A stretch of DNA of 64,000 nucleotides from Chlorokybus atmophyticus. Taxonomy: Eukaryota; Plantae; Mesostigma and Chlorokybus algae. Location: positions 62,001 through 126,000 of the forward strand of contig RHPI01003536.1 of assembly GCA_009103225.1 (NCBI GenBank), read 5' to 3'. The position numbers and the translations under genes were made by a program. Shown here piece after piece: positions 3,324 to 46,480 of this stretch. Position 1 is the first letter of the stretch; each line of letters opens with the position of its first letter. A model generated the notes under the pieces. The model saw nothing but the letters and a program-made list of their open reading frames with translations, made no database searches and had not been told where the DNA came from.

Positions 3324-5565
3324 TAAGCGTAGTACACGCGACGATGCCACGCGAGCTTGAAGAGGCGCGAGCTTCCTTTGAGAGCGTTGGCTCCCCGCAG
3401 AGCATCATTGCAGGCTACTGTAACCTTCAAGCTATTGAATAGTTGCAAGTTTAACTCGCACGCTGGAACCGGTTCTTCATGTACCGAATTCCAAGATATG
3501 TGTCGTACAACACCGGGGCACAACCTGTCAGCTGCACAGCGCGCACCAAGAAGTAATACTTCGACCTAGCACACGTGCCGCACGCGCCAACCGTGACTTT
3601 CAGTCTGTAAGGCGCCTAAGCTTGAGCCGACATCACAGCGTGGTGTGTGTCATCCTTTCAGTGACACCCAACGCCGACTGCCGACCAAAGCACACCACAC
3701 TGCCATGTCGTGAAATCATCCATTGATTCTCACATTGATGCTCACTTATGCCTCTTGTGTCACAAAGCAGACAGCCACCATGGCGTGTTCGCACAGTCTA
3801 GTATCTCGTATGCAATAAGCAAATACAACGGTTCAATCTCAATGAGTGCATAGCCTACAACAATACAACATGTCAAATCATGGGCAACAATAATCAATTC
3901 GTCGCATATCCGCGTTGAGTACATAAGGTCCATGGTTTTTTGATGAGGGCACAAACTTCATGCAACTATTTAAGGTAATCCATACCACGTTACTTGTGAA
4001 ACGGAAAAGTATGTTAAGACTAATATGATATTTTTGCACGACCATCCGACTGATGATTGTTATGGAATGATAGCGCTAGCACAACAATAGATGCTGTTGT
4101 TAGACTTACACTATTATTGCGAATAATAACTTACTTACCTATATATCAATCCAGCAAAACTAGCATTATTGAATGCAATGTTGTGCTTAACGATCATGTC
4201 CTAGACGAGTGTTTGCTACCTGTATCATAATGATCTATTGGTATGAGCCACAGCTTATGACCTTTAATACTATTTCTGTTTCATTTTCATTCGTCTTTGC
4301 AAACAACTCAAATAACATCTAGCAACAAATGAAAAGCACCGGGCTAGTTGAATGCTTTGAAACAAGTAGGCAACGTGCGTTATTAAGCATTATGTTTGCA
4401 ACAAAAAACATACATGAATGAACTTATGCATAGATTAACTCTGGAGTTTATATTCTTCGCACGTAGACCTTTTTGTAATGTATTATGGTTGTAGCCTATA
4501 ATGGCTGTATCAACACTGCCCAAGGTTTGTTGAAGCTTGTAGAGTTTCATCACCTTAAAAAATGTTCAACGATGGCTAGCCAACAAAAATAAAGCTAAAG
4601 ACCACGTGACAACAGGGTATTGGTAATAATATGTACTATTACATGCGAGTGGGTAAATAATGTCACATACATTGTACAATAGCACAAGAAGAAGTCATTT
4701 ACTACAATCATTTGTAAAAGATTTATGCCATAACATACCCTAAATGGCATTTCATCACAAAGATTTTATATACGCGACTTGTTTGTGTTGTCATCGATAA
4801 AGCTCAGTTTTAACTAAGTAATAAATACTTATACATCAACATAATACAATATATATTAATGTGTACCTGTACAAAAGCTGATAGTCATTATGTGAAGGTT
4901 TGTGAAAATAACCTTTATTAGGTTAGGATATTGTGTTCATGAACAAACCAATCTGTATGTATACTTGTAGCAATTACGCAGAAATAGATCAAGTTGTGCA
5001 TAAAGAGTACGAGTCAAAGCTCAAATCTTGCAAATCACTTAAAGTCAACATGTACAACTTGAGTTTTTTTAACAGTCAGCTGATAATCAATCTGCTATCC
5101 GCAAGTTTACAGTTTCTGCACCCCCATGTTGACACACGATAGAAATGTATACACACAAGCAGATCAAGTCGTTTGAAGAATTAATTTTCAAGCCACTTCC
5201 CTTGTCGCAACACGCAACAGGCTCAACATATGTGCGTAATAGCGAGATGATGCGGTCCGTACAATAACAGAACTGCTCTCACCTGCACTGTCTGCAATGC
5301 ACTTTTGTCAGCAAGTGCATACATCACCTAGGCAACTTGTTTGCTTGCGTGCTAACATTGCTGTATGGACTAAGACACTCAGCCTTTACTATATATACAT
5401 CAATAGTCCTGACACTAACTGGGCACAACTAGTCAACTTACACCCAACAACTATTTACTGAATTGAAAGAATTATACCCTTAACGAACAACCACGCCTGC
5501 AAATGTTAAGATACTCTACTACCAGGTGTGCGTGTATGACCCACTGCAGCAGCAGCAGCAGCATC

Positions 5566-7308: not shown

Positions 7309-7367
<59 letters not shown>

Positions 7368-9111
7368 NNNNNNNNNNNNNNNNNNNNNNNNNNNNNNNNN
7401 NNNNNNNNNNNNNNNNNNNNNNNNNNNNNNNNNNNNNNNNNNNNNNNNNNNNNNNNNNNNNNNNNNNNNNNNNNNNNNNNNNNNNNNNNNNNNNNNNNNN
7501 NNNNNNNNNNNNNNNNNNNNNNNNNNNNNNNNNNNNNNNNNNNNNNNNNNNNNNNNNNNNNNNNNNNNNNNNNNNNNNNNNNNNNNNNNNNNNNNNNNNN
7601 NNNNNNNNNNNNNNNNNNNNNNNNNNNNNNNNNNNNNNNNNNNNNNNNNNNNNNNNNNNNNNNNNNNNNNNNNNNNNNNNNNNNNNNNNNNNNNNNNNNN
7701 NNNNNNNNNNNNNNNNNNNNNNNNNNNNNNNNNNNNNNNNNNNNNNNNNNNNNNNNNNNNNNNNNNNNNNNNNNNNNNNNNNNNNNNNNNNNNNNNNNNN
7801 NNNNNNNNNNNNNNNNNNNNNNNNNNNNNNNNNNNNNNNNNNNNNNNNNNNNNNNNNNNNNNNNNNNNNNNNNNNNNNNNNNNNNNNNNNNNNNNNNNNN
7901 NNNNNNNNNNNNNNNNNNNNNNNNNNNNNNNNNNNNNNNNNNNNNNNNNNNNNNNNNNNNNNNNNNNNNNNNNNNNNNNNNNNNNNNNNNNNNNNNNNNN
8001 NNNNNNNNNNNNNNNNNNNNNNNNNNNNNNNNNNNNNNNNNNNNNNNNNNNNNNNNNNNNNNNNNNNNNNNNNNNNNNNNNNNNNNNNNNNNNNNNNNNN
8101 NNNNNNNNNNNNNNNNNNNNNNNNNNNNNNNNNNNNNNNNNNNNNNNNNNNNNNNNNNNNNNNNNNNNNNNNNNNNNNNNNNNNNNNNNNNNNNNNNNNN
8201 NNNNNNNNNNNNNNNNNNNNNNNNNNNNNNNNNNNNNNNNNNNNNNNNNNNNNNNNNNNNNNNNNNNNNNNNNNNNNNNNNNNNNNNNNNNNNNNNNNNN
8301 NNNNNNNNNNNNNNNNNNNNNNNCTTTTACTTACAGTGACGTAGTCTGTGACAAAGTCTGGTGTCGGAGGGGCGACGGTCACCTCTCCGGCTGGCTTCAT
8401 TCCCCCTCCAGGCAGGTCCCTGAACACCATCGGTCCCCACCCCGTGCCGGGCAGAGCAGACGCCTCGCATGAGGGCAGAAACGCCGCCCTCCTGAGGAAG
8501 ACAACTAGTAAGTACAACACGCCCGTACGCATGCAAGCCATGACACAGAATGACACCCTCTTGGTCTCTCACCTGGCCAGGATGGAAGGGTCGATTGGTG
8601 TCTCTTCGCTGGTGCTGGAGTTGCCAATAGTAGTACTACTACCATCCCTATCGCACATGCATGCAGCAGAGGAGGGGGGTTGCAACTGTGTGGCCAGCGC
8701 TCCCCCTCTCATCGTCAGGAAGCGTCCGCCGCCCCCCTGCAGGAGGAGGATGACCAGGGCGAAGGCCAGGGGGCCAAGCAGGAACACCGATACAAGGCCC
8801 AGGGAACGCAAAGGACGGGAAGACCAAGGCCAGGGCCAGGAGGAAGACCCAACAGAAGGAGACGGGGGCCTCTCTGCAGGAGGCAAGGTGTCGATGAGTT
8901 TGACATGACAAGTATGACATGACAAGTGTGACAAGACAGATGTGTTTGTTTCTGGCCACACACTTGACTCGCCTGCGTCTTCCCATGCTTGCTTCATCGC
9001 TACATGTGCCCCACTTCGCCCGCCTTCTGGCGACCCTTCGCCGCTACTGCTGCCAGCACTGCCATACATGCTGCTGGCGCTGCGCCTCCCCGGGCCAGGT
9101 ATGCTGCTCAT
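5566..9111 (-). CDS. Multi-exon type II membrane glycosyltransferase, GT61 (DUF563)-like; spans an assembly gap
   Basis: TM segment LGLVSVFLLGPLAFALVILLLQ; HRKIVNMDEV (cf. RRIxNxxEV); exon at about 6240-6150 reads DVDVYVGTHGGHGALSLFLPRCAAFLEV, matching the GT61 DVxVGxHGAGLxNxxF motif. Confidence 0.65.
7368..8323. other. Assembly gap (N run) after a (GA)n microsatellite
   Basis: N run, with (AG)n at about 7312-7367. Confidence 0.99.
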
Positions 9112-11223
9112 GGTGGCGTACAACTACACCGCTTCTGACGATGACAACTACGACAAATACAGCTACCACTGTGTTGGGCTGCTGAGTTGTGTGACAATTT
9201 CGTTGACAGACTTACGACGAGCGAGATGCGCTAGCTCTTGCCGCAAGCTTACTGCTAGGACGGCGGGAAGTCGTGCCAGACGACCCAAGAAACAAAAAAA
9301 TAACAAAAACGAGCAAGATGCGCTGAGCACGCAGAGCAGAGCAGAGCAGAGGCTTGCGCAGTATTGCGCACGCGCCAGCCTTTCTTTCCAAACCTTCAGC
9401 CTCCCCTGCCAGCTTGACTTCTTCTCGAGCACCGGTTTGCCGGTCGGTCAATCGGTCAAGTTGATCAGGGGTTCTCCGCATGCAGACCGGTGGCAAGCCG
9501 CCCCTTGGCCGGCTGAGGGAAACGCGCCCGGTCCGACCGTACCCTGCGGCTTGCGGCATCGGCCAGGAGAGGAACGTGCGCCTTTGATACTTTGGCTGCG
9601 CGAGGAGGCTAACTTATGATCATCGCGTGATCATTATAGCCTATCAGGCTATCAAATATTAGGTTTGTCGTTGTCGTATTAGGCAAGCCTGGCCCAGGCA
9701 GGGCCTCTGATTTAGAGGGGAAGGCATGACTCATGTTGTTTGGCGTTGCGCAGCTTGGACTGTGGCGTTAGTCATCCGACAGGTTGAAGCTGAAACTTGT
9801 CAAGGTGTGAAACCTCTAGGGTTCGACCCTAGTACAGTGTATACGCACGTGCCAAGGGGGCATTCTGATGGCAACGCGAACTGCACGAACTTGCACATCG
9901 ACGGTACAACCTGCTGATCCCCCCCCAAAGGCGATGCACGATCAGCAACGAAAGTACCCAGTACGGTAATCCATGCAATACCGTAAGCTAAACTTAGTGC
10001 CACGAAAGTCTTCCTATAATAAATAATCCGGCGAGGCTCTGTACAACGAAAGTGTTACTAACTTGCCGGCAGCCAGACTAATGCTTCCAATGACATTGGA
10101 CTACATGCATCGGTTGGCGGGGTTTCGGGGGAGAACAACTTATACATTCTGGCGGCGCCTTTTATGAAGATTTTGTGGCACTACGGTATCATGGAAAAGA
10201 GTATGACATTTGTAGTGGTATGTTACCATACTTTTGATTGAGTTGTTAGTAATAATCTCTGATAATATAATGTACCTCATCACATTCACGTTGATTTTGC
10301 TTGATGCATAGTTGAAATGACATGACAATGTGCGATGTTGTTTCGGATAATACTGATCTCGCATTTTGTGTCCACCGGTGTAACACATCATTATAAGCAC
10401 TACGCTATGGCAGCAAAAGTTGCTGCCATATTAAAAGCCATATGTCCCGTATGTATCCCACCGCGTAAAGGTAATATTGTTGCTCAATTCAAATTGCGGC
10501 GCAAAAATGGCCACGACTGTGTAGTTGATAATGCTTGTAACAAATCATTTTGGCAAAACCTCAGACAACATTGCCGCGCGGGTTTTATATACAAAGGCTC
10601 GGCATATAATATTATTATGCAACTTTAATGGCTTAATTGAATGAGCGCAAATACACATAGCTAGTAGCTATACCATATCTTACATGTAGGATCTATCATT
10701 CGCATGTATGCGGCGGCTGCGTACGGGTGCTTACATTACAATACATCAGGATAAAACATACATTAAAATTTATATAATCTCATTTATCCGAACGACCGAT
10801 TACAAAATTGACGCGATATGCACAACGCCGGTATTTGTTATTTGCGTTGATTGATATGATAATCTATTATATATTGGTGCAGTATGTTCAAACACAATCA
10901 TCGATTAACCATTGAAAATTTGCATAATTGGTTTGAAGCAATTATAAAAACATCTTTAACCGACTCTTTCTTAACAGACACATCAAGAAGGTTGGGACAT
11001 TTAAAATATACGGCACGTATATTGATTTTATTGCGTTTTACCCCAGCTTTATACACATAAAGACCAAAAGGCAGTTTGGGGACATTTATGTTTGAAGGTA
11101 TATGGCAAAAGTAAAGAGTGGGCCTTGAAATCCAGCAAGGTAAAAAGTTGAATAATGATATGCAAATCATGACTGTAATTGTTCATGATACCACTATCAG
11201 GCTTATTTGGTCGGCCTGCGTGT

Positions 11224-11828
11224 TGTCATGCCTATCGCCCAAGCATGCCAGTCGTCATCGGGCATGCCTACAGCGAGACCCTCGCCCGGCTTACCAGCAT
11301 GGCGACCCGCGCGCGTCTCTGACCAGTAGCTAGGTCATGTCTCTAGAGTAGCTCATGACCATAGCCTACATAGGCACCGCGCGTAGCTGTTTAGTTGTGA
11401 GTTCAGTTATCAGTCGGGTGCTATATCGAGTGGGATTTCCTGTGGAAATAGCCTCGACATGACCGTTAGCTTATGTTCTGGACAGTCATGAGTTGACTTG
11501 TATAAGTAAGCACAGTGTTCACCGGATCAGCTGGTGACACTGTAAGTGAGAAAGCTAAGAGCTTGTGAAGCGACTTGAACTACGAAACACCCCGTCCCGG
11601 TTCCCAAGAATCCCCTCACCGTGTGAGAGCCTGTGCATGTTCTTGTGCACTGTGCTTGTCCTTACTGTGAGCTTTATGTACTTGGTCACGGTGTGCTTGT
11701 TGGCATCAATCAGGGCATAGCATCCACGTGTTGCTTGCTCATTCACCTCACTTAACAGTGTAATTTCTCTTCCACTCATGCAAAAAACTGTGTAAACAGC
11801 ACTACCTATAGTAGTGGCTTGTTGACTT
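11224..11828 (+). repeat. Terminal repeat A1 (605 bp)
   Basis: Aligns end to end with 21165-21769, about 20 differences counted by eye. Confidence 0.95.
11501..11547 (+). promoter_or_regulatory. Putative element promoter (TATAAG at 11501) and predicted transcript 5' end / self-primer (GGTGACACTGT, 11533-11543)
   Basis: A TATA-like box lies about 30 nt upstream of a 15-mer that is the exact reverse complement of 11825-11839. Confidence 0.6.
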
Positions 11829-11839
11829 ACAGTGTCACC
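11829..11839 (+). promoter_or_regulatory. Putative self-priming primer-binding site (ACAGTGTCACC)
   Basis: Immediately follows A1 and is complementary to 11533-11543. No TGG-type tRNA PBS is visible. Confidence 0.65.
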
Positions 11840-14800
11840 CTCTTTGCTCAAGTGAGTGTAGTTGCAGGCTGTACATCAGCATCGCAATCTGTAGTTGTAC
11901 ACATCGCAGTGCAGTGCTGTCACCGTCAGCGCATAGCGCGCACAAGCGCTAGTGTGTTGGGTGATAGCAACACTGGAGATTCCATTGTAGAGCACAAATA
12001 CTCTACCCTTCATCCACTTTCACCATCGCATCAGCTGTATGAGCAGGCCCACCCCTTTCTCGCCAATAGAAGAAGGGGACCTCAACAGCTGGAGCCCAAC
12101 CTCCAACCTTCATGATGTGTGGAAGTCCGTCGCTGAGTTGCACAAGATTGATGGCTATGGCGAGTTGGCCAGCACAATAGCCTCCACGTCACTTCATAGC
12201 CCATCGGTTACTGTCCATATATTAGCGACCCCACCAGCCTCAGTCACGGGTCTCACTCTAACTGCAGCCATGGAGAAGGCAGAGAATGAAGAAGTTGAGG
12301 TGGTAGTGGCCTCGTCGACTCCTGCAGAGATCGAAAGCAGGAAGGCCGAGCGCCGGATCAGGATACTCAACCGCACCGCTGCCATCATCAGGGAGCAACA
12401 AGAGGAGCAGCAAGCTGCAGCGTTGGAGATGGGTACGCCCCTGCTACCAACACCGAACTCGCGTGCTCCAACGGGAGGCAGTGTTTTCACCCTCGGCTCA
12501 GTGGCATTGCGTGCACCCGCGCTTACGGTGGGCGCGGCCATGTCGGACTCCCCGTTGAAAGACCTCTACGCCGCACTTCGGCGCACCTTCCCACCTCAAA
12601 CCAACAGCAAGGTGGAGGAGTTGAGGCGTTTTCGACGGAAGCCCAATGAGGACCCTCTCCGACTGTATTCACGGTTGGAAGGGTTGCTTAGGGACACTGA
12701 TTACAAAATCGTCAGCGAGGAGGCGGCAGCAGTGGTGTATGTGGCCGAGTTGGATCCCACCCTGAGTGAGTCAACGCGCCTGACGCTGAACTACAGCAGG
12801 CCCCTCGGCTACACCCTCAAGGAAGCTTTCGAGACTGCACAAGCCATCCACAAGCGCGCAGTGTATGAGAAAGCGGTGCTGGACACCAACCGCAGTGCCT
12901 CGCGGCCTATGGCAGGCACAAGTGCAGAGCCTCTTCGGCGAGACCGCAGCCGAGAGCCGCAAGGCATCCACAACAAGGATAAACGGTCAGCTCATGCTGC
13001 CCTGGTGGCTCCAGTGCTGTGCCACCGGTGTGGTCGACATGGCCACTACCAAAAGGAGTGCACCGAAGATTATGGCAACCTTGTGTGCGACTACTGTCAC
13101 AAGACGAGACACTTGGAGACAGTATGCTGGCTCAAGTTCCCTGAGCTGCGGCCCTCCATTGGCTACAACAACGGCAACAGCGCTGTTGGCTATCGCGGCA
13201 ACAACAACAACAACAACGGGGGCTACAACAACAGCAACCACGCTGGCGGCTACAACAACAGCAACAACGCTGGTGGTCGCAACAATGGCAACCACGCTGG
13301 TGGCCACAACCCCAACAACAACAACAACGCTGGCGCCCGAGAAGCTGGCTACAGAGGGAAAAACCGCCCTCCACAGCACAAAGGACTTGAGGGACGTCCT
13401 CGCGCTGGAGCTGCTGCTGTAAAGGCACCAGCCAATCCACCAGCTATTGACCAAGTGGCAGCCCTGATGGCGCGCGTGGCACAGCTGGAGGAGAACAAGG
13501 AGCAGGACTACCAAGCCTGCTATGCTGCTAGGTGGGCACTGATGGCACCAAAACGGGATAGGGACACTCCCACGCCGTCACGCGTACAACCATCAAGACG
13601 TGCGCGCAGGGAAGCTGGCGCGTCGTCAACAGCGGCATCGTCGGACGCCACAAGTGGTGCTGCCTCGACAGCCACAACCACCGCTGGGACGACGCCGTCG
13701 CCGTCCACACCGACCACGACAGCAGGTGTCAGCACTCTTGGCACCACGCTGTCCCCGGCAATGGAGAGCACCCACGCCGCAACAACCATGGTCGTTGGGT
13801 TCGTAAGTGGTGAATCCACCACTCCTGCCTCCATCGAAGCGACCACATTGTCCGCAACTGCTGCCACCCTCACAGCCGCCACCTCAACAACAACGACTGC
13901 TGCAGGTGCCGCCACCATCGCTTCCAGTAGTGCTGCCATACCCACTGCACCACTTCCTGAGGTTCGAACGGCACCGCCACCAGCGCTTGACGTCACACAG
14001 CAAGTGCCACGCGGGCCACAAGCAGAACGCGCCTGGGCGTCAGTTCTACGCAACGTGGAGCCCACCACCATTGCGTACGGACCAGGTGGGCAATGCACCA
14101 CACGCGTGGCACGCGATGATCGCATCTTGCCCCTACCACCTCCAGAGTACCACACGCTGCCGGAACCCACACAACAGCAGCTGGAGGATGAAATCCTCGC
14201 CGGCACTGCGCCAGAGATGAGGGACCGTCTCTTCGGGGTCACCTACGGGCGACCTGCAGTATTAGAGCTGGCCATTATGTTGTTCTTGGCATTACACGCA
14301 CGATTGCAAGGCGCACCCAGTCAAACGCGGCAACCCATGCCCGCTCAACAGATCGACTTCGAGCCTTCGCCACTGGACCCACTCGGACTTCAGCGCCACA
14401 AAATACAAGACCTCGTGGTCACCATGTCAGACATCGCGCTGGGCACTGATCCCGCTCTCCGGGGGCTCACTCCAGGCAGTCGTCAAGAGCGTTTCTCTGC
14501 TCTCGAACAGGCACATCGTCATCAGGTGGACCAAGCTGCCCAAGTGGACGCTCGCCGACAAGCGTACGAAGCCGCACACGCGGTTATCGTACCAACCATA
14601 GCTCCGGCAGATGTTGCCAGCGCCTCTACAACGCTGACAACAGGGTACTCCACGGCAGTCGCCATCGAACAGCCAGGGCAAGCAACTGTTGCAGACCAAG
14701 CGAGGGCGTTGGCACAACAATTGAGGGGGGTAATCGCCCCGCTGCTGCCTTCTTTGGTCGAAGACATGCCCGAGGATCAACGCGATGCAGGGCGAGGGTA

Positions 14801-16607
14801 CCTCACCCCGCAAGGGGACACCACACAACGAGGAGGAGCTGGTATGGTGGGGGAGCAACAACTCCGTACCGCACTCATCCGGCAAGCTGTCATGCTGCAC
14901 ATGCCTGAGGGCAACACGTTGAGACAGATGATGGGGATGCAAGAGGGCAGCGCCGCTCGTGCCCGTCTCGTGACATGGCTCGTTGCCAATTACCCTGCTG
15001 TCCCCCTGTTTGCCTTTGGCAATCGAGCATCATGGTTTGGGGCGTTCGTTCATTCGCTGCGTCAAGCATACGACGAGGCTGCCACCACAGCCCCGGACAC
15101 GCTAGAGGGAGTGCAAGAGGCAATGCTGCGGCTGCCAGGGGTGGAAGCCGCACGACAACGGCGGCGCATCGCCATTGCTCATGAGCTACACGCACAGCAG
15201 ACTGACCTCCAGCGCACCCGACGCGCGCGCGCCATGACCGTGCTCGATGTGGGAGTGGTACAAGGAAGGTGGGATGCCTACATGGCAGGGATCTTGCGAG
15301 TCCCCACCATCACTCACGATATGCGACGACAGCTGCTACGCACCGTATACCTGCAGCCCATGCCTCAATATCATCATTGGACCGACACGGACACCGAGCC
15401 CACGGCCACGTGGGAAGGGACGTTGGTCAGAGAAGCAGCTCATGCTGTCCGATGGACGTACGCCGCGGAGCAAGCTGAACGCGAGGCAGGCCCACAAACA
15501 CCGGGGCCGCCGGGGTTTCCTCCACAGCCATTGGGTACACCCGCAGGCATGATTCCATCTTCGCAGAGGCGGCATCCACCTGCACCGCCACCACAACCAG
15601 CGCCGGAACCTCCAGCATCGAGGCCCCCCCGTGTCTACCAACCATCACGACAAGGTCGGTTCGGCAGAGGGAGAGGGCAAGGAGGGGGTTCTCCGGACCC
15701 AGCAGGCAGAGGAGCTCTGGCTGCAATGCGCTCAGCACCCCCAGCTGAGAGAACTGAGGCAAAGGTGCAGACAGCTCGTATGAAGAGGCTGCGTATCGAC
15801 GCCAATGCTGCCATGGTGGCCAACCAAGGCAGGCACGTTACCATCAACGGCCTGGCACCCAAGCGAGCAATGTTGGACACTGGAGCACAGCCTGTCATCA
15901 TCGGGCGCTTCCTCGCGCGGTCTCTCGGCATAACCAGCTCCGACTTGGTGCCTTGCCCGTACGTGTTGTACACTGCCACAGGTAGCCGAGATAAGGTGAT
16001 GGGAGTCACCAGGGAGGCCTTTTGCATTCGGTTGACAGGGCTGGACCCAACTCACACAACCGAGGTCGTCCAGCAATGTGTGGTCACCAATGCCGGCTCC
16101 TTCGACTTTCTGCTTGGGCAGGACTTCAACTTCCCTGTGGGCATGGGCCTCGACTGCTAAACAGAGCGAGCGTGGTTTCGGCCACATTGGGATGAGGATG
16201 ACGGGGAGGTGCAGGGTTTCCTGCCTCTCGAGTTGGTCTCGCGCACGCGCGCCCAGCGCAGAGTGGCTGCTGTGGCCACACGCAACCACTTTCGCACACG
16301 GAAGGCTGCAACGGCCACAAACGACGGCGCTCGGACGCAAGTCGCTGCTGGTGCCACGGTCCTGTGTCGGACCGTCGACTCCTCTCCCACCCCGTACAAC
16401 GAGGAGCAGGAGGATGCCACCGTGGAAGTGGCAGTACAAGACCCAGCTGAACGGCGCTGGCGTGCACAGGTGGACGCACACATCTTGCTCAGCCATCCAC
16501 TGATCACCACGCGCTTCCCCAACTACCGAAGCCACATCAAGGTGCAGGACCACCATATGGTGGCCACCGGAGTGGTGGAGTTCCACACCTTTCGCAGGCA
16601 GCAGGGC

Positions 16608-17560
16608 ATCACAGTGTTGGAGCTGTTCGGAGGCATTGGCAGCGGTCTTGCTGCGGTCCTCAACACAGGGGTAAAGGTTGTCAAACACTATTACTGTGAC
16701 CCAGACCCACACGCGCAGACAGCCCTGAAACACCACTTACGCCAACTGCACGAAAGGTATTCATGTCAACTACCCCTCTCGGCGTTGCAAGGCAGCCTCA
16801 AAGCATTGCCACAAGACATCCGGCTGATCACTGAAGGTCACCTACTGTCCCTCGGCAACGTCGACCTGTTAATAGCTGGGTGGGAATGCCAAGGGCACTC
16901 CAGGGCAGGCAAGGGGCACGGCCTTGAAAACCCTCGCTTCGGGCTGTTTTTGGAGCTGATGAGAATCATCCACCTTCTTCAACACGACCAGATCTCCAGA
17001 CCCCTGGGGTACGTCATCGAAAATGTGCATTCAGAGGACGACAGGCGTCCGCACGTGGTCTCCAGCTACCGACAAGTTTGCTCCATTCTGGGGCACCCAC
17101 TCAAGGTGAACGCTGCACGACATGGCTCGCGCGCACATCGTATACGTGCAAAGTGGACAAACTTGGCCACCGTGGAAGAACTCATGACCGCAGAATACAC
17201 GCGCAGCGCTCGGCCGCGCGACCAGCTGGTCAGTGACATCCTTGACCCCGGCCGCACAGCACAACCTGTCCTGCGTCATGACCACCACCACTTTTACCCG
17301 TGCAATCAGCCCGGGCAGCCCCGTCGCGCACTGTCCACATTGGTGTCCTACCCAGGCTCCTACGCATTCCGGAACGGTGGTGACGGGATGGTGTTTGATG
17401 CGACCACCAACAGGTTGGAGGAACCCAACGCGCGCGAACGTGAACGCGCCATGGGATCCTTCCCCAATAGCATCACGGGTTCATCGCTGACAGATAGTCA
17501 GCAATGCCAGCTGCTTGGCCGCGCCATGGACCAAAACAGCATGGTATGGCTACTGGAGCT
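16608..17560 (+). CDS. Cytosine-C5 DNA methyltransferase domain embedded between protease and RT
   Basis: Motif I VLELFGGIG; IV DLLIAGWECQGHSRAG; VI YVIENV; VIII HGSRAHRIRAKW; IX/X-like EPNARERERAMG..LLGRAM, in canonical order. Confidence 0.9.
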
Positions 17561-20500
17561 GAGCTTCGCATTACAAGACCGCCACGTGTCCTTCGAGGAT
17601 CTCGAACACTTGGCTGGGGGGTGGGCTGATCGCGAAGTCGACACCAAGGCAGCTCACACAGCCCTCGAGGTGGTCCACATGGAGGAGCAAGCAGCAGTGA
17701 CAGTGGAGGACATTTTCGTGGTCGCCAATGCAACCTCTTGGGACCATGCCATTGGCTCGCTGACCACAGAAGACACTCGAGAGAAGCTGGAGGCTCTCCT
17801 CAACAAATGGAGGAGCCAATTCAGCTTCAATGTGAAGGAATTGGGGACATGCTCAGTGTACCAGATGGACATCGAGCTGGTGGACACTGAGCCGGTGTTC
17901 CGGCGACAATACAGCCTCTCCAAGTTGGAGGAGGACCTGGTGGAACAAAGATGTAAAGCGCTGCTTGATGCAGGCCTTATCGAAGAGTCCACATCGGACT
18001 TCGCAGCAGCAACTGTCATGCCTCTGAAGAAGGATTCAGCAGGCAACTGGACAGAACGACGCATGTGTGGCGACTATCGCCCCCTCAACAACAAGACCAA
18101 GCAAGACAGGTACCCCATGCCCACAGCGGAGGGTATCTTTGATGATGTGGGAGACTGCACAGTCTTCAGCATCCTGGACATGCGTCAAGGGTACAACCAA
18201 ATCGCCATCAAGGACGAGGACAAGCACAAGACCTCCTTCTGGGGCAACCGACAGTTGTACCAATGAAAGGTGATGCCGTTCGGGCTGAAGAACGCCCCCG
18301 CCAAGTTTCAACGCGTCATGGACAAGGCCTTGAAGGGGCTGGACTGCGCGCGGTGCTACATCGATGACATCCTCATCTTCAGCCGCAGCAGCGAGGAGCA
18401 TCTTCAGCACATCGAAGCGGTGCTGGAACGACTCAAGGGAGTGGGGATGACCGTACACCCCGACAAGTGTACCTTCTTCACTCACAAGGTGCCATACTTA
18501 GGGCACATGATTGTGCCCCATGGTATGTATGTGCAGCAGGCAAAAGTAGAGGCTCTGGCAGCTATCCCTGCCCCGACAGACCTCACACGTCTGCGCGCTT
18601 TCTTGGGACTTGCCAACTACTTTCGCCGGTTCGTGAAGGACTTCGCGATGATCGCCAGGCCCCTCAACGAGCTACTGAAGAAGGAGGTGGAGTTCGCATG
18701 GCTTGAGCCGCAACAGCAGGCCTTCGAGGAGCTAAAGAGCAGGCTCACCAGCACTCCCATCCTTCAACGTGCGGACTACGCCAAGCCTTTCATCCTTCAC
18801 ACCGACTGGAGCAAGCTGGGGATGGGAGCGGTGCTGGTGCAGCACGATGAGAACAAGAAGGAGCGGGTGGTGTCATACGCCAGCCGAAGCAACAACAGCG
18901 CCGAGGCCAACTACAGCAGCTACGAAGGGGAGTGCCTCGCTGCAGTGTGGGCCATCTCCTTCTTCCAACCTTTCCTCTTTGGGCGACAGTTCCAACTGAT
19001 CACCAATCATCAGCCCCTCAAGTGGCTGATGACCAACCAACACCTGACAGGGAAACTTGCTCGATGGGCCCTGCTGTTGCAGGAATACGACTTCGAGATC
19101 GACCACCGCGCTGGCCTCACCAACCAGGACGCCGATGGCCTCAGTCGCAACCCTCACCTCAGCAGCAACGACGCAACTGGAGCTCGGCATGAGCTCGTCC
19201 CTGCAGCAACAGCCCCCACCATGGCAGCCATGTTTGCTGCTGCCGCGTTGCGCTCAGGGCGCAAGACCAACACCACGGCCTCAGCAATAGCAGAGGAAAT
19301 TCCTGCCCTTGAGCCGACGGACTCTGCTACAACCACACCCTTGGGAGACGCCCACGCAGCCGACATTGACATCGATAACATAGAGCTGGCGCCCACTGAC
19401 ACCAGGCAGGACATATGGCAGGACAAGCCATCACTCTCCTTTCTTCAAATTGGCCAGCTTCCCTCCGGCATGAGCGCCCGAGAGAAAGACCGAGTCAACC
19501 AACGCACCCGTCACTATCGATGGGCAGGTGACAAGCTGTATCGCCGCTTCCACGACGAAGACAAGGAAGTGCCGACCCCGATCACGCGCGAGGGCATCAT
19601 CACTTCCCTCCATACTGAGCTTGGACACTTCGGTGTCAAGCGTACAGTCAGCCTAGTGAGGCCACAATATTGGTGGTATGGATTAACAAAACAGGTGCAG
19701 GGGTTCGTCAGCCACTGCCAACAGTGTGACATGGTGCGCGCCAGCCTCAACACGCGTAGCGCCACCTTGCACCCACTCCCCATCTCCGGTATCTTTTATC
19801 AATGGGGACTCGACATATTGGGGGACTTGGCACCTTCAGCACGTGGCAACCGGTACATCCTGGTCATGATCGAGCACTTCTCCAAATGGGTGGAGCTGGT
19901 ACCATTACCCGACAAGAGCAGCAGGGGGGTGTCTCAAGCCTTCCTCTCTCACGTTCTCAGCCGATTTGACAGCTGCGCGGAGGTCATCACTGACCAAGGT
20001 ACTGAGTTCAGAGGGGAATTCGACACCCTCTTGGACAAATGTTACATCGACCACCGTCGGACCTCGCGTGATCACCCTCAAGCCGACGGCCTCGCCGAGC
20101 GTACAGTACAGACCATCAAGAAGGCACTCCGCAAGTACGTGCTGGAGTACGAGAAGAACACTTGGGATGATCACCTCCCGTGGGTGGCCCTCAGATATCG
20201 ATTGTCAAAGCAGGCGGCTCTGCGGGAGTACAGCCCGTACTACCTGCTGTTCGGGCGACCAGCATTGCTCCCCTTCCGTGCGCAGCAGGAGGTGGATCGC
20301 GTCGTGAACAACCTCGACGACCCTGACTGGATGCACCACGACATCACCACGCGCGCCGCGCTTTTCGAGCGCACCGTCCCCATGGCCTTCAACAACCTGC
20401 GTATCGCGCAGCATCGCGACACGCTGCGCTACGAGCGCGTACGCAGCGGCTTCTACAAGGAGCGCCAACGGCGGTTCCAAGCGGGGGACTTTGCCTATCG

Positions 20501-20708
20501 CATGGCGGCCACTAAAGACACGCTTGACACCTCCGTAGGCCGCACCGTCTACAAGGTACTCAAAGTGTACCCCACAGGGGTGCTGGACCTCTTTGGTCAA
20601 AACGGAGAGAGGTTGAAGGACAACATGGTGAACTGTGCGCCATGTCACCTTCCTTATGTAGCCGGCTTCGGGCGTATCCAGCACCCTCGTCCCGCGCGCA
20701 ACACACGC

Positions 20709-20843
20709 TGTAAACGCTGCGGCAGCGCCGGCGACGACGCACTCATGATGCTCTGAGATGGCTGCAACAAGGGCCTGAATTGCTACTGCCTGGAGCCACC
20801 TCTGGACGCGATACCTATGGAGGAGTATTGGTGCGGCGATTGT
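20709..20843 (+). CDS. Degenerate C-terminal PHD finger (missed by the ORF track because of a stop)
   Basis: Read-through gives CKRCGSAGDDALMML*DGCNKGLNCYCLEPPLDAIPMEEYWCGDC, which has PHD C4HC3 spacing with the third Cys changed to TGA and the His changed to Asn. Confidence 0.8.
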
Positions 20844-20910
20844 CGTACCAACGGCCCTCCTCACTTGCGCTAGCAGCTGAGCTCTGGAGCTGGAACCTCC
20901 CCCAGAGCCC

Positions 20911-20919
20911 AAGGGGGGG
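20911..20919 (+). promoter_or_regulatory. Polypurine tract (AAGGGGGGG)
   Basis: Lies directly upstream of repeat B1, about 40 bp after the polyprotein stop. Confidence 0.8.
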
Positions 20920-21162
20920 TGGCTTGTTGACTTTGTGGGCTACAGCACAGCATGTACACTAGGGAGAGCACCGACTCCATCTGCCCGTACTACCCAGCAG
21001 CAGCAGACCAGCTGCACGAAGCACTTGTCACCATGAGGGTTGGGGTCACCTTTTGCTTGTTGCTGCACGTTGCACAGGTGGCGCAGCAGCATATCCAGCA
21101 CGGCATGGCTGTCCATGCAGCTGTCCGAGACAGCGTGACCCTCGACTCCCCTCGACCCGACA
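20919..21162 (+). repeat. Repeat B1 (244 bp)
   Basis: Aligns with 21755-21998, about 7 differences by eye; begins GTGGCTTGTTGACTT and ends CCCGACA. Confidence 0.95.
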
Positions 21163-21164
21163 GC

Positions 21165-21769
21165 TGTCATGCCTATCGCCCAAGCATGCCAGTCATCATC
21201 GGGCATGCCTACAGCGAGACCCTCGCCCGGCTTACCAGCATGGCGACCCGCGTGCGTCTCTGACCAGTAGCTAGGTCATGTCTCTAGAGTAGCTCATGAC
21301 CATAGCCTACATAGGCACCGCGCGTAGCTGTTTAGTTGTGAGTTCAGTTATAAGTTGGGTTCTATATCGAGTGGTGATTTCCTGTGGAAATAGCCTCGAT
21401 ATGACCGTTAGCTTATGTTCTGGACAGTCATGAGTTGACTTGTATAAGTAGGCACAGTGTTCACCGGATCAGCTGGTAACACTGTAAGTGAGAAAGCTAA
21501 GAGCTTGTGAAGCGACTTGAACTACGAAACACCCCGTCCCGGTTCCCAAGAATCCCCTCACCGTGTGAGAGCCTGTGCATGTTCTTATGCACTGTGCTTG
21601 TCTTTGCTGTGAGCTTTGTGTACTTGGTCGCGGTGTGCTTTTAGCATCAGTCAGGGTATAGCTTCCACGTGTTGCTTGCTCATTCACCTCACTTAACAGT
21701 GTAATTTCTCTTCCACTCATGCAAAGAACTGTGTAAACAGCACTACCTATAGTAGTGGCTTGTTGACTT
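21165..21769 (+). repeat. Repeat A2 (605 bp)
   Basis: Copy of 11224-11828. Confidence 0.95.
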
Positions 21770-21998
21770 TGTGTGCTACAGCACAGCATGTACACTAGGG
21801 AGAGCACCGACTCCATCTGCCCGTACTACCCAGCAGCAGCAGACCAGCTGCACAAAGCACTTGTCACCATGAGGGTTGGGGTTATCTTTTGCTTTTTGCT
21901 GCACGTTGCACAGGTGGCGCAGCAGCATGTCCAGCACTGCATGGCTGTCCATGCAGCTGTCCGAGACAGCGTGACCCTCGACTCCCCTCGACCCGACA
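21755..21998 (+). repeat. Terminal repeat B2 (244 bp), overlapping A2 by 15 bp
   Basis: Copy of 20919-21162, followed by GTGT. Confidence 0.95.
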
Positions 21999-22262
21999 GT
22001 GTTTCCCCTCATTTCCCCACTAAAAATTGCTCAAAATAATGCATGCTGCAAGAAAAGTTGTCGTCCACTGTTTGTCAAGTTGGTATTCATGTGTATGTCA
22101 AGGATTGTTGTGGCCTTTATGTGGGTCTTTGCAATCTTACATAATGGATGTTCGCTGTATTAAAAGCAGCTTACTTATCCGATTGGTCAGAATCTGCCAA
22201 CTGGATCGCTTGCGGCGAGGACAAGTCTGTAAGTCCGCTCCTCCCTTTTTACCGCGTCGGCA

Positions 22263-22349: not shown

Positions 22350-22965
22350 AGGACCCGCCAGGGTATTCCATGTACTATACATTGAGTATCCATTATAATT
22401 ACAATATACCTTATCATCCTTGTCACATCCATGATGCCCATCGACCTGACGCCTTCTGTGCATGCTCGTAACTCGTAACATGCAACACATGGGATTTTTG
22501 ATTTATTAATGATTGTAATTTACATCTTTATTTAATATTAATGCATGCACCCCCCGAAGACTCGCCAGGGTATTCCATGTACTGTACATTTTATATCCAC
22601 TATTATTACAATTATACCTTATCATGCTCACCGCAGCTATGATGCCTTTGGACCTGACGCCTCTTGTGCATGCTCGTAACTCGTCACATGCAACGCGTGG
22701 GATTATTACGTTGTTGACAATCGTGGTTTTAATCCTTGTTCAATACTATTGCACGCACCCCCAAAGACCCGCCAGGGTGTTCCATGTTCTATGTATTGAA
22801 TATCCATCCATATTAACATCTTAACTTATCTTGCTTACCGCTACCGTGTTGCCCTTGAACCTAACGCCTCTCGCATGCTTGTAACTCATCGCGTGCATCA
22901 CATGGGATTTTTTATTATTAACCATCGTGGTTTATTGCTTTTTATTACACATTATTGCACGCTTT
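22350..22965. repeat. Three diverged tandem copies of a 207-bp unit
   Basis: CGCCAGGGT(A/G)TTCCATGT anchors at 22356, 22563 and 22770 (period exactly 207); a shared ACCT(G/A)ACGCC..CATGCT(C/T)GTAACTC block occurs in each copy. Confidence 0.85.
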
Positions 22966-35827: not shown

Positions 35828-38800
35828 ATGGAGTACAAGTGCGCGAACGTGCTGGGGGCAGCCTACCGCGGCGCCAACATAGTCATCTCAAGAGACCGGT
35901 CAGTGGGTGTGCGCTGCGTGTTTCTCTTGCATGCGTATGCGTGTGCGTGCGCGTGCGTGCATTTGACTGATGAGGCGTGCAACCTCCATGGCACGCAGCA
36001 CGCTGCTCAGCGCGGCGTCCAACCGCGTCGCCGTGACGGACCTCGCCGCGGCCTCCTCGCGCGTGCTGCCCCACGCCCACGCGCGCGCCATCGCGTGCCT
36101 CGCGCTCCACCCGGACGGTGAGGACACAGCTGGAGACAGAGACTTTGCGCACGGTGGTTGTGATGCTGATGTGTGGTACTGACCATGCTGTTGTAGGCAA
36201 CTTGCTGCTGTCGTTTGATGATGCGGGCAAGGGTATACTCACCAACGTCAGGCGCCAGGTGGGTTGGTTGCGTGCGTGCGAGTGTGATGCATGCACATAT
36301 CAGCGGGTGCGCGCAAGAGCACCCGTGCGCATGTGTGCGTGGGGTGCTTTGGTGCATGAGGACCAGTGTATGTCTATGCCTGTGTGCGCACGAGCCACCC
36401 AGAAACTTGTAACCCCTCTTCGCTCCAGTTATTACGTAACGACACAACCTCTTTGTATACAAACACCACAGGTTGTTCTCCATCATCTCAACTTCAAGGC
36501 CCCCGTCAAGTGCGCGCAATTCAGCCCCGACGGCCGCTACTTCGCTGTCGCCATCGGCAAACACGTGCAGGTGACTGTCGAAACACTGCTATCATGGCTA
36601 ACGTAAATACAACAACAACAACAACAACAAACACACGTTCACTTACAGGTGTGGAGGACTCCCGGGATGGCCAAGGAGTTCGCCCCGTTTGCCCTCCTGC
36701 GCACTTACACGGGCTGCTACGACGATGTCACGTGCATCGACTGGTCAAGCGATTCGTGCTGGTTCCTCGCCGGCTCCAAAGATCTGACGGTGAGTGGGAA
36801 ACAACATTTTATGGTTTGCTTCACGCACATGCACACAACACGGCTGTGTGTGTGTGTGCGCACATGCACACGCGTACAACACAGGCGCACGCACAGGAAC
36901 ACACATGCAAATGCACAAACACCCATGTGTGCACACACCCAGGCGCGCGCATGCGCACACGCAGGCACGCGCACGCACACATGCAGGCACACACACACGC
37001 GCGCGCGCTCTCGCTCACTTTGTTGTTCTCTCTAGGTGAGGATCTACTCGCGTGATCCCGTGGAAGGTTTCAAGCCCGTGACTCTGTCCGGCCACCGCGA
37101 CAACATGGTCGCTGCCTTCTGGGACGAAACCGACCCGCACGCCCCACAAGTAATGTCGTTGTTGTTGTATACTGTATTCACGCTGACACTTGCACTACGA
37201 CTCTCCCCACGACAACAAGTATACCACAACAGATCTACTCCGTGTCGCGGGACGGCGCGCTCTTCGTGTGGCAATTCAAGCCCGACGACTCCACACCAAC
37301 CTCACCCACACCCACACCCACACCCACAACCGCAAGCACAACGACAACAACCCCCACCCACCTCTCCCGTGGCGTGTGGTCCCGTCTCTCGCGCCACTTC
37401 TTCAACCAGACTCCCGCCAAGTTGTCCAGCGCAGCTTACCACAGAGCGGGCAGGCTTCTGGTTGTCGGGTTCTCCTCTGGAGTGTTTGGCTTGTATCAGA
37501 TGCCGGGGTTTGAGAGCATCCATCGGCTGAGCGTGTCGAGGGAGAGGATCGATAGCGTGGCGTTCAATGGGACGGGGGACTGGCTCGCGATGGGGTGAGT
37601 GCTTGATGGGTCGGGTACTTAGTTGTGGTTCAGTTGTGAGGTTGAGATGATGCGTGTGAGCGGGCGCTTGCGTGCGTATGTGCCACACGTGCGCGTATTG
37701 AGTGAGTGTGCGCATACATACGCACGCACGCATACATGCGTGCACGCATGCGTGTTAGAGTGTGTGTGCGCACATGTGTATCGATCCCATAGGTTTGTGT
37801 TGGGGTGTGGAACGCATTCACGTACACACACTCAAGTGTCATTACCTCTTGTGTTTCATGTGTGTGCAGGTGTGCGAAGTTGGGTCAGTTGCTCGTGTGG
37901 GAGTGGCGTTCGGAGACGTACATCCTGCGCCAGCAGGGCCACTACTATGGCGCCAACACCGTCGCGTTCTCACCGGACTCGCAACTTATTGCCAGTGGCG
38001 CCGACGACAACAAGGCAAGCATGTCCTTATTTGCTGCAAGGGATCAACACACGCTCACACCCGCATGCGTACACAAGCCCACACGCACGTGCGCGCGCAT
38101 GTACAGACGCACGCACGCACACGAGAGCACACTCGCGTGCACGCACACGCGCACGCGTATGCAGTGGTGCACGCACAACGTGTACGCACATTTGCATCTG
38201 CACACCAACACTTGTGCCATGCATGCAGGTGAAGTTGTGGAACGCCGCGTCGGGCAGCGCCTTTGTCACGTTCAACGAGCACACGTCTCCCGTGACGAGC
38301 GTGACCTTCAGCGCGGCGGGCAACTGCGTCCTGTCGGCGTCGTTGGACGGGACCGTCCGCGCGTACGACCTCGCACGGTACCGCAACTTCCGCACGTTCG
38401 TTACGGGAGCCGAACGCGCGCAGCTCGCGTGCCTCGCCGTCGACCCCTCCGGAGAGATCGTGTGCGCGGGTACGGGTTGTCGTGTGTGTCGTTGCAGTGC
38501 GTGCATGGCGGATAGGCGCGCGCGTGTATATGTGGGCGTGCGCATGCGTACACGCGCACATATACACGCGTGCGTTGAGAGCACTTTTGTAACTTGCATT
38601 GAGATAGACATCTGTCCGTTATTGTATGGTCGTGCGCATGGGCAGTCTTCTTCAAGCGTACACGGGGTACATTTAGAAATTTGGTTACGTATAGGTGCTG
38701 TGGACACCTTTTCTCTGTACGTCTGGAGCATGAAGACGGGTCGGCTGCTGGATGTGCTCAGCGGGCACGAAGCGCCCGTCCACGGCCTTGCGTTCAGCCC

Positions 38801-40423
38801 AACACAGGTGCGATGCTGTACTGTCTGTTGTTGTGTCATGTAAGATGCGAAGCACTCATCAACGAGTTGTGTTAGGCGGTGCTGGCGTCGGCGTCGTGGG
38901 ACAAGACCGTGCGGTTGTGGGACGTATTCACGGGGAAGGGTGGCGTGGAGACGTTCAACCACACTCACGACGTGCTCGCGCTGGCCTTCCGCCCAGACGG
39001 TGAGAGTTGTGTCATATGCCACACCCACGCAAACACACAAGCACACGCACATTGTCTCAGGTATACACGCACACACGCGCACGCATGCAGACACCCACAT
39101 ACAACAACAACAACAACGTCCTTTCTCTCTCTCAGGCAAGCAGCTCGCTTCCGCCACGCTCGAGGGCGGCCTCTACCTGTGGGACCCCGTCGAGGGCGAG
39201 TTGCGCGGCACGATCGAGGGCCGTCGCGACGTGGCGGGGGGGAGGAGGGCAACGGACCGACAGACCGCCGCCAACGCGTCCTCCGGCAAATGCTTCAACA
39301 GCCTGAGCTACTCCGCGGACGGGACGTACCTGCTAGCGGGTGAGGAGAGTAGTTGTGCGTGTGTGGGTTGTGACAATCACATCCGTGTACGTGCACACAA
39401 CCATGCATGCGTGTGTGCACGCACGACATTAACACATGTCGTGTGATATGCGCGTAAAACATCAGATGCACATACACGCATACATGCATGTTTCCTCTAT
39501 GCCGTGATTATCATCCTGCATGCGTCGTTGTTGTGTCAGGTGGGAGCAGCAAGTACGTGTGTTTGTACGACGTGGAGGAGCTCGTGCTGCTTCGCCGTTT
39601 CCAGATCACGTTCAACCGCGACCTGGACGGCGTGTTGGACTTCCTCAACAGCAAGCGCGTGACCGAGGCGGGACCGTTGGACCTCATCAACGATGACGAT
39701 GATGACGATGAGAATGAAGATGATCACATGAACAAGAAGGCCGAAGACATGCTACCTGGTGAGAAACCCAACAAGGGCCGTCCCGTGGCTCAGACCAAGT
39801 GCGTGGTGTTCTCCTCGACGGGACGCATGTGGGCCGCTGCGTCCACGGAGGGCGTGTTGTTGTACTCGCTCGACGACGTGGCCGTGTTCGATCCCACCGA
39901 CCTCGATATCGACATCACGCCGGCCGCGGCGGAGATAGAGTTGCGGGCCGGGCGATATCTACGCGCCCTCGTGATATCATTCCGACTCAACGAGCCGACA
40001 TTGATATTGCGGTGCCTGGCGGCGGTACCCGTTACGCAGATACCCGTCCTCGCGCGCACAATACCAACATCTTATCTCAACCGGCTCGTACCTGCACTCG
40101 CGGAGCTCCTCGACACGTCATCTCATGTGGAATATGTGCTCACGTGGTGCGCCGAGTTGTGCACATCGCGAGGGCGTGCGTTGCAAGAGGCAAAAGGGTC
40201 CTATTTGCCGGCGTTTAGGAGTTTGCAAAAGGGACTCAAGCGCATGCATGATGAGCTCGCGGGCGTGTGCGAGGCCAACCAATACACGCTGGAGTACCTG
40301 GCCTCTATATCAAAGATTGCTGAAAAGAAACAACAACATGATGGCGAGGGTGAGGGTGAAGATCAGTTGCGGGGTAGTGGGGCAAACGTGAAGAGGACGC
40401 GAGCATTGCTGGTAGCTCGATAA
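35828..40423 (+). CDS. PWP2: Periodic tryptophan protein 2 (UTP1, WD40; 18S rRNA processing)
   Basis: MEYKCANVLGAAYRG; QLLVWEWRSETYILRQQGHYYG; TVRAYDLARYRNFRTF; VWSMKTGRLLDVLSGHEAPV; ITFNRDLDGVLDFLNSKR. Confidence 0.95.

Positions 40424-46380: not shown

Positions 46381-46480
<100 letters not shown>

Follow-up and report, generated by a model that had tools for sequence, protein, structure and literature searches.

In the textbook scheme, long terminal repeat (LTR) retroelements insert a linear complementary DNA (cDNA) by its ends, and their circular forms are regarded as dead ends; a "circle-junction" route of integration was once proposed for retroviruses and later abandoned. Tyrosine-recombinase retroelements of the DIRS, PAT and Ngaro groups are not known to make a target-site duplication (TSD) on insertion. 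Here we describe a retrotransposon with a DDE integrase at positions 11224-21998 of a 64,000-nucleotide stretch of the Chlorokybus atmophyticus genome (GenBank assembly GCA_009103225.1, contig RHPI01003536.1, positions 62,001 to 126,000 of the forward strand; hereafter the window), in which split direct repeats take the place of two colinear LTRs, and we consider how this layout may arise from a molecule with joined LTRs.

Gypsy elements with a Dnmt3 domain in Pol, designated KnitGypsy-Dnmt3, have been reported from Klebsormidium nitens (de Mendoza et al. 2018, Nat Commun 9:1341, PMC5890265). The legend to Fig. 4c of that paper gives them a DIRS retrotransposon repeat structure together with domains typical of Gypsy; the paper holds no TSDs, attachment (att) site, analysis of the primer binding site (PBS) and polypurine tract (PPT), or mechanism for these elements. 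A Dnmt3 domain is also carried by the SymbioDIRS-Dnmt3 elements (PMC5890265). In two-LTR circles, the palindrome where the LTRs meet is cleaved by the integrases of prototype foamy virus (PFV) and human immunodeficiency virus type 1 (HIV-1) (PMC1180852, PMC1905944). A literature search on split direct repeats with an integrase or Gypsy elements, on the name KnitGypsy-Dnmt3 and on Chlorokybus retrotransposons found nothing beyond the 2018 legend. A preliminary description of the window element, made from the sequence, had treated its layout as not previously described, which was too strong, since the layout had been published in 2018 for KnitGypsy-Dnmt3, without a mechanism. Elements of this type have already been published; what can be tested is how they integrate.

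Results

Split direct repeats and a palindromic joint

A repeat search and blastn reproduced the positions of two pairs of direct repeats, and their order A1-coding-B1-A2-B2, as given in the preliminary description (Table 1). The A copies (605 bp) are 96.7% identical over 606 columns and the B copies (244 bp) are 97.1% identical, the second B copy ending at 21998 or 21999; matches of this length and closeness cannot have arisen by chance. The similar divergence of the two pairs fits the creation of both in a single event. The element begins with TGTCATG and ends with CGACA, and the TG start, CA end and GTGT flanks noted earlier were all seen on direct reading. Exactly 2 nucleotides (nt; GC, 21163-21164) lie between B1 and A2, whose joint forms a perfect palindrome, GACAGCTGTC. 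The end of A2 and the start of B2 have 15 nt in common (GTGGCTTGTTGACTT, 21755-21769), and this 15-mer recurs at the end of A1 (11814-11828) and at the start of B1 (20919-20933), which is adjoined by the polypurine run AAGGGGGGG. No further copies of the element were found in the whole 64-kb window by blastn.

A Ty3/Gypsy-type polyprotein with a methyltransferase and a PHD finger

One reading frame spans the coding part (12039-20873) and is interrupted by three in-frame stops, at 16158-16160 (ending the first open reading frame (ORF) piece), 18264-18266 (inside the reverse transcriptase, RT) and 20754-20756 (inside a PHD finger). Given these stops and repeats that have diverged by ~3%, the window element is a dead copy. 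Pfam matches follow one another in the order CCHC knuckle, aspartic protease (PR), C5 DNA methyltransferase (DNMT), RT, RNase H (RH), H2C2, rve (the integrase core; integrase, IN) and split PHD finger. Those in the first ORF piece are zf-CCHC (about 13020-13067) and Asp_protease_2 (about 15837-16127), and the ~860 amino acids (aa) between zinc knuckle and protease (aa 401-1260), a long region of low complexity, gave no Pfam match. Within gag, a degenerate 27/54-nt tandem repeat (13175-13352) encodes a tract rich in Asn and Gly.

The methyltransferase lies between protease and RT (about 16578-17579; PF00145 at 2e-8), retains motifs I (FGGIGSG), IV (GWECQ, with its Cys) and VI (ENV), which are conserved in relatives, and finds its best solved structures in DNMT3A, 3B and 3C. 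Motif IV reads GWECQ instead of PCQ in the window element and its relatives alike, a clade-wide variant. At E<1e-30 a search with the methyltransferase returned 306 representative proteins; among the best 150, many have lengths of 1,300-3,456 aa.

The third ORF piece matches RVT_1, RT_RNaseH, Integrase_H2C2 and rve, and comprises the RT motif YIDD, RH (about 18699-19088), the integrase zinc domain (about 19584-19742) and a DDE core (about 19800-20075) with D515, D575 and E610 (D,D35E), residues that an alignment found invariant across 17 relatives. The best solved structure for pol is the Ty3 Gag-Pol 7q5b, at 1e-73, followed by the Ty3 RT 4ol8, and the integrase matches that of PFV at 1e-19. 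Downstream of the integrase, the PHD finger (20709-20843) is split by the third stop; its second half matches PF00628 positions 17-47 (E 0.0035), and intact relatives have PF00628 at the same position. Judged by the domain order PR-RT-RH-IN, by RT, RH and IN that are closest to Ty3 and by the DDE residues, the window element is of the Ty3/Gypsy type, as first proposed. The earlier reading of its domains was incomplete, having overlooked the Dnmt3-like methyltransferase and the PHD finger, which are markers of the clade.

Apart from the present elements, only tyrosine-recombinase retroelements are known to have split direct repeats, and the layout could on that ground be ascribed to a DIRS-like element whose recombinase was lost or acts in trans, the integrase being irrelevant to it. 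The absence of a tyrosine recombinase, already noted in the preliminary description, was borne out by searches for a PF00589-type or other recombinase, which gave no match up to E 1 in the three ORF pieces, the 860-aa region or the ORFs of other frames, and no such domain is among the Pfam domains of intact relatives. The invariant catalytic residues of the integrase, the Ty3-type RT, RH and IN, and the perfect 4-bp TSDs and TG...CA ends that are the signature of a DDE integrase further argue against a tyrosine-recombinase origin, which we consider extremely improbable.

The layout is shared by distant streptophyte relatives

Protein searches recovered a large clade of DNMT-bearing polyproteins and no close kin of the Chlorokybus family (pol at most 51% and DNMT at most 44% identical); identity of pol to the named K. 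nitens proteins was 38-45% (E 1e-145 to 1e-193). Loci were fetched from K. nitens (L002, L089), Marchantia polymorpha (L003), two Closterium species (L004, L088), Calypogeia fissa (L087), two further NCBI assemblies (L085, L086) and 80 Joint Genome Institute (JGI) metagenome contigs (L005-L084); L001 (6.8 kb) and L085 do not contain the element ends. DNMT is present in every locus with sufficient upstream sequence. The block B1-A2-B2 directly follows pol in ~30 metagenome loci and in both K. nitens loci, both Closterium loci, Marchantia and Calypogeia, so that no fewer than five named streptophytes, from six genome assemblies, share the split layout, all of them distant relatives. Complete A1-internal-B1-A2-B2 elements numbered 12. 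Ordinary LTR pairs, which the preliminary description had considered for other family members as a sign of a one-off rearrangement, were found neither as (B.A)-internal-(B.A) nor as (A.B)-internal-(A.B) in the window element or the relatives examined. Two of the 12 complete copies are young: L087, on a 41.7-Mb record, with A and B pairs 99.4% and 100% identical, and L088, on a 1.9-Mb contig, with pairs 99.8% and 98.4% identical. These results probably place the window element in an old streptophyte clade of Ty3/Gypsy elements with a Dnmt3-like methyltransferase and a PHD finger.

The single copy in the window and the lack of any fetched relative more than 51% identical might suggest a one-off artefact, that is, an ordinary LTR element that was rearranged, nested or misassembled. 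Against this, the architecture, palindrome, PPT and PBS placement, and TSDs recur across independent assemblies, from five or more named organisms, and across numerous metagenome contigs, copies stand on the 41.7-Mb record and the 1.9-Mb contig, and the layout has been published for K. nitens. An artefact of this kind has almost no probability left to it, and misassembly or a one-off rearrangement is excluded.

Target-site duplications at the A-start and B-end

Of 16 distinct complete elements, 11 have a perfect 4-bp TSD at the A-start and B-end, and two more match at three of the four positions. The duplications read were GTGT (window), ATGT (L011), CCAA (L032/L013), AAGG (L055), AATG (L057), AACC (L084), TACA (L016), AATT (L040), AGAC (L042), GTCA (L087) and AAAT (L088). 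With a chance of 1/256 per element for a perfect match, 11 of 16 is not due to chance; as a sequence pattern it is the mark left by a DDE integrase that acts on TGTCA...GACA ends. The terminal structure and flanks of other copies, on which the preliminary description had pinned its model, are in line with it.

Reverse-transcription signals define an LTR of B plus A

In each of the 33 related elements that were tabulated, B1 is immediately preceded by a G-run PPT. At the other side of the internal region, the 11 nt directly after A1 are the exact reverse complement of GGTGACACTGT (11533-11543), which lies 296 nt before the A end, and this pairing was equalled by 1 of 500 shuffles. In the Closterium, Calypogeia and metagenome families, 10-16 nt after A1 likewise pair with a site inside A; the sequences differ, the pairing covaries, and nearly all shuffles do worse. 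Self-priming of the Tf1/Sushi/Tcn1 type uses the same PBS arrangement (PMC6317226). From the self-primer we infer an RNA start inside A, at the predicted site, and a U5 (unique 5') end that coincides with the A end. Inspection by eye found no PBS of the transfer-RNA type beginning TGG after A1. The 15-mer TGGCTTGTTGACTT was rejected as a PBS because it recurs after the PPT and is missing in other lineages.

Because the PPT precedes B1 and the PBS follows A1, reverse transcription defines the LTR as B+A. By ordinary rules the cDNA would be (B.A)-PBS-internal-PPT-(B.A), with a U3 (unique 3') region made of B, 2 nt and the first part of A. The PPT and the covarying, putatively self-priming PBS thus lend independent support to the earlier proposal of an LTR of B+A opened inside one LTR. 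At the predicted outer ends of this cDNA, the B-start and A-end, no conserved TG/CA or inverted repeat was present in the elements compared.

The B1|A2 joint reads GACA-NN-TGTCA in every lineage, always with a 2-nt spacer, so that the two integrase ends face each other within each LTR much as they do at a two-LTR circle junction. The spacer is GC in Chlorokybus, Klebsormidium, Closterium, Marchantia, Calypogeia and L086, and GC or AC in older metagenome copies, with transition-type decay. About 0.9 chance occurrences of the exact 10-mer GACAGCTGTC are expected in 962 kb; as a detector it misses most metagenome copies, which are mutated (GATA/TATC, spacer AC), and repeat mapping was used instead. 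In four old metagenome copies (L009, L030, L064, L070) both palindrome arms carry the same transition (GATA..TATC), the pattern that would be expected from deamination of a symmetric CAG/CTG methylation site.

The A2|B2 joint consists of the U5 end and the U3 start in most copies. It varies by the 15-nt overlap in the window, 8 missing nt in L034/L035 and a 2-nt difference in L088, and the A end differs by 0-2 nt among metagenome copies. This variability is consistent with a joint that is remade in each cycle.

Template-switch schemes have been proposed for PAT, Ngaro and DIRS-type elements. By such a scheme a linear A-int-B-A-B cDNA (int, internal part) could be made directly, from an RNA that runs from A1 to B2 and whose ends are restored by template switches between A1 and A2 and between B1 and B2; the integrase would then insert this linear cDNA by its natural ends, and neither a circle nor joined LTRs would be needed. 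Direct synthesis would account for the exclusive A-int-B-A-B orientation, and PAT/Ngaro/DIRS-type elements show exactly this layout (a comparison also made in PMC5890265). However, the PPT at B1 and the putative self-priming PBS at A1 in every lineage call for cDNA ends at the B-start and A-end, there is neither a purine-rich stretch before A2 nor a primer site after B, and no known step would halt synthesis exactly at TGTCA and GACA. An inherited, templated A2|B2 joint should moreover be constant, yet the joint varies between copies. We consider direct synthesis fairly unlikely. Addition of B after A2 by reverse transcription itself, by way of read-through RNA, a second primer site or stalled strand displacement, was also examined, and none of these yields the observed structure.

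Integration from a joined-LTR molecule

The integrated ends are the A-start and the B-end, yet A2 is joined to B2, so that the substrate would have had its U5 end linked to its U3 start; we infer a circle or a joined-LTR intermediate. Reverse transcription would give a normal linear cDNA, (B.A)-internal-(B.A), whose outer ends would not be integrase substrates. Its U5 end (the A end) would then be linked to its U3 start (the B start), giving a two-LTR circle or its joined-LTR equivalent, and the DDE integrase would cut one internal palindrome after CA on both strands, leaving recessed CA-3'OH ends and 2-nt 5' overhangs. Insertion of the permuted molecule with a 4-bp stagger would produce A1-internal-B1.A2.B2, with B2 as a by-product of integration outside the RNA template. 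Only the A-int-B-A-B permutation would retain the promoter and R-U5 (R, repeat region) upstream and U3-R downstream, so that only this form could be copied again. Cutting of a joined-LTR intermediate at the internal palindrome by the DDE integrase is, in our judgement, a rather probable explanation of the A-int-B-A-B layout. The two-LTR circle opened inside one LTR and integrated by the DDE enzyme, as first put forward, agrees with the layout, the TSDs, the PPT and PBS and the palindrome; its circle is putative and, if symmetric, leaves the absence of A-B-A-int-B copies unexplained.

Several observations weigh against a joined-LTR intermediate. A symmetric two-LTR circle has two identical palindromes, so that A-B-A-int-B copies would be expected as well, and none was present among 17 loci with a visible 5' side; either an asymmetric intermediate or rapid collapse by recombination between the nearby A copies could account for this. 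Three complete elements (L004, L010, L029) have no matching TSD, the 15-nt A2|B2 overlap of the window element was not seen in the other lineages, and the Chlorokybus family itself is represented here by a single copy. Lastly, ~20 metagenome loci have the form A-int-B only, four of them with perfect TSDs. This form was not found among the seven loci of named genome assemblies, and its loci may have arisen by deletion, by assembly collapse or from one-LTR circles. L013 (A-int-B) occupies the same insertion site as L032 (A-int-B-A-B), with the TSD CCAA and a 3' flank that is 97% identical, whereas their internal parts are only 92% identical. The pair suggests a B1-B2 deletion, a chimeric assembly or two related host genomes, and, because the site is shared, at least some A-int-B loci would be deletions or assembly collapses.

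The same anatomy, with the small variations at the A2|B2 joint, would result if a linear (B.A)-int-(B.A) molecule integrated by way of one internal palindrome, breaking the chromosome, and host end-joining then linked the free A2 end to the free start of the leading B (B0). This route needs no separate circularisation step. It would, however, entail a double-strand break at every insertion and is as symmetric as the circle, so that it too predicts the A-B-A-int-B copies that are absent, and we hold it to be distinctly unlikely.

Observations on individual loci

L040, considered as an ordinary B.A...B.A element, was ruled out as such and is actually an A-int-B copy inside a satellite. The metagenome locus L025 has 123-bp identical ends (1-123 and 9049-9171) that contain the B|A palindrome core, the element being assembled as a 9,048-bp circle of the internal part and one B.A unit. 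This circle is most likely a repeat-collapse artefact; its shape is that expected of a one-LTR circle. In L004 (Closterium NIES-54), direct repeats of ~730 bp, 80% identical, lie just outside A1 and B2 (3505-4218 and 17648-18379), and a 1.6-kb internal duplication (10715-12321 and 15527-17133) contains another B, the third, along with 55 nt from the start of A. In L003 (Marchantia, 16048-22037) an assembly gap (N run) falls exactly between A2 and B2 and the flanks have no matching TSD, the scaffold assembly apparently having been broken by the split repeats.

Within an element, A1 and A2 are nearly always more diverged than B1 and B2 (L011, L014, L029, L032, L055, L084, L004 and the window); in L029, for example, the A pair is 84% and the B pair 93% identical. 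Possible causes are gene conversion between the B copies, which are close to one another, faster decay of A, or chimeric assembly.

Features and surroundings of the window element

The features of the element are collected in Table 1. About 350 bp downstream of it, in AT-richer DNA, is a 207-bp tandem repeat (22352-22928; 2.8 copies, 76% matches). A fragment of a different Ty3/Gypsy chromovirus, with a Tf2-1-like SH3 domain and a chromodomain, lies at 63043-63975 (-) and runs off the end of the window. Two host genes were recognised, a WD40/Utp12 (WDR3-like) gene at 37623-40420 (+) and a cytochrome-b5 front-end desaturase gene at 47545-50199 (+). Exons of the latter are 96-100% identical to a Chlorokybus atmophyticus protein, and two poorer alignments, at 73-81%, extend past exon borders; this match assigns the window to Chlorokybus or a very close relative. 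Simple repeats comprise a run of 65 G (2381-2445) and the microsatellites (GA)28 (7312-7367) and (TC)56 (46381-46491).

Table 1 Features of the retrotransposon, in positions of the window
Feature	Position	Strand	Basis
Left TSD, GTGT	11220..11223	.	Read directly; identical to 21999-22002
A1, 3' part of the reverse-transcription-defined LTR, beginning with integrase end TGTCATG	11224..11828	+	96.7% to A2
Putative U3 remainder with promoter, in A1	11224..11532	+	Self-primer position
Putative R-U5, in A1	11533..11828	+	Self-primer position
GGTGACACTGT, predicted RNA 5' end and Tf1-type self-primer	11533..11543	+	Reverse complement of the 11 nt after A1
Primer binding site ACAGTGTCACC, directly after A1	11829..11839	+	
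ORF piece 1 (gag, low-complexity region, protease)	12039..16157	+	Pfam, translation
ORF piece 2, same frame (Dnmt3-like methyltransferase, N-terminal part of RT)	16209..18263	+	Pfam, structures
ORF piece 3, same frame (C-terminal part of RT to first PHD half)	18270..20753	+	Pfam, structures, alignment
Second half of PHD finger, after third stop	20757..20873	+	PF00628
Polypurine tract AAGGGGGGG, plus-strand primer site	20911..20919	+	Read directly
B1, 5' part of the reverse-transcription-defined LTR (U3 start), ending CGACA	20919..21162	+	97.1% to B2
Palindrome GACA-GC-TGTC, head-to-head integrase ends with 2-nt spacer, putative att site	21159..21168	.	
A2, second A copy (U3 remainder, R and U5 of the 3' LTR)	21165..21769	+	
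B2, second B copy, overlapping the A2 end by 15 nt, CGACA at right end	21755..21998	+	
Right TSD, GTGT	21999..22002	.	

Discussion

The anatomy of these elements and their TSDs indicate that reverse transcription sets one pair of ends and the integrase uses another, a mismatch conserved from Chlorokybus to liverworts and probably mosses. Because the two sets of ends differ, a joined-LTR form would be required for every productive insertion. We give about an even chance to the full proposal, namely that the streptophyte clade is ancient and still active, that its obligatory integration substrate is a joined-LTR cDNA, circular or concatemeric, and that the DDE integrase cuts this at a permanent palindromic att site inside the LTR instead of processing linear cDNA ends. 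If true, it would be a natural case of circle-junction integration and a mechanistic bridge between LTR and DIRS-type retroelements, and the near-identical, probably active copies of Calypogeia and Closterium would offer a natural system for the use of circle junctions by a DDE integrase. Split direct repeats are not diagnostic of tyrosine-recombinase elements, which is relevant to automated transposon classification, and the DNMT-bearing Gypsy clade, reported earlier from Klebsormidium, probably takes in elements of the deepest streptophyte branch and of land plants as well.

Among known systems, KnitGypsy-Dnmt3 shares with the window element a Gypsy-type pol, a Dnmt3-like methyltransferase in the polyprotein and the order A-coding-B-A-B, and the K. 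nitens loci share its B-A-B block, GACA-GC-TGTCA joint and PPT placement. The window element differs in being hosted by Chlorokybus, in belonging to a distant family (pol 38-45%), in being degenerate and in its 15-nt A2|B2 overlap.

Canonical Ty3/Gypsy elements (Metaviridae; Tf1/Sushi, Tcn1) have the same PR-RT-RH-IN order, DDE integrase, TG...CA ends and 4-bp TSD, and in both a PPT and a PBS flank the U3-R-U5 unit, the putative self-priming PBS resembling that of Tf1/Sushi/Tcn1 (PMC6317226). Unlike them, the window element lacks two colinear LTRs, and its PBS and PPT bound B+A rather than the integrated termini; its integrase ends appear to lie inside U3 rather than at the edges of U3-R-U5, which would lead to permuted copies. 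It also has an added DNMT, and a PHD finger where chromoviruses have a chromodomain.

The PAT-like DIRS, Ngaro and SymbioDIRS-Dnmt3 elements have the same A1-internal-B1-A2-B2 arrangement, which corresponds formally to a two-LTR circle that has been opened where B meets A. They combine it with a tyrosine recombinase and a DIRS-type RT, whereas the window element has a DDE integrase, a Ty3-type RT and 4-bp TSDs.

In PFV and HIV-1, as is proposed here from the sequence of the joint, a DDE integrase meets two head-to-head ends and cuts after CA on both strands, giving integration-competent ends. The retroviral palindrome, however, arises only when LTR edges are ligated, its cutting restores the normal linear genome, and the junction route is accessory or disputed in retroviruses. 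The palindrome of the window element is instead a permanent part of each LTR, and its cutting would yield a permuted genome by what is apparently the normal route.

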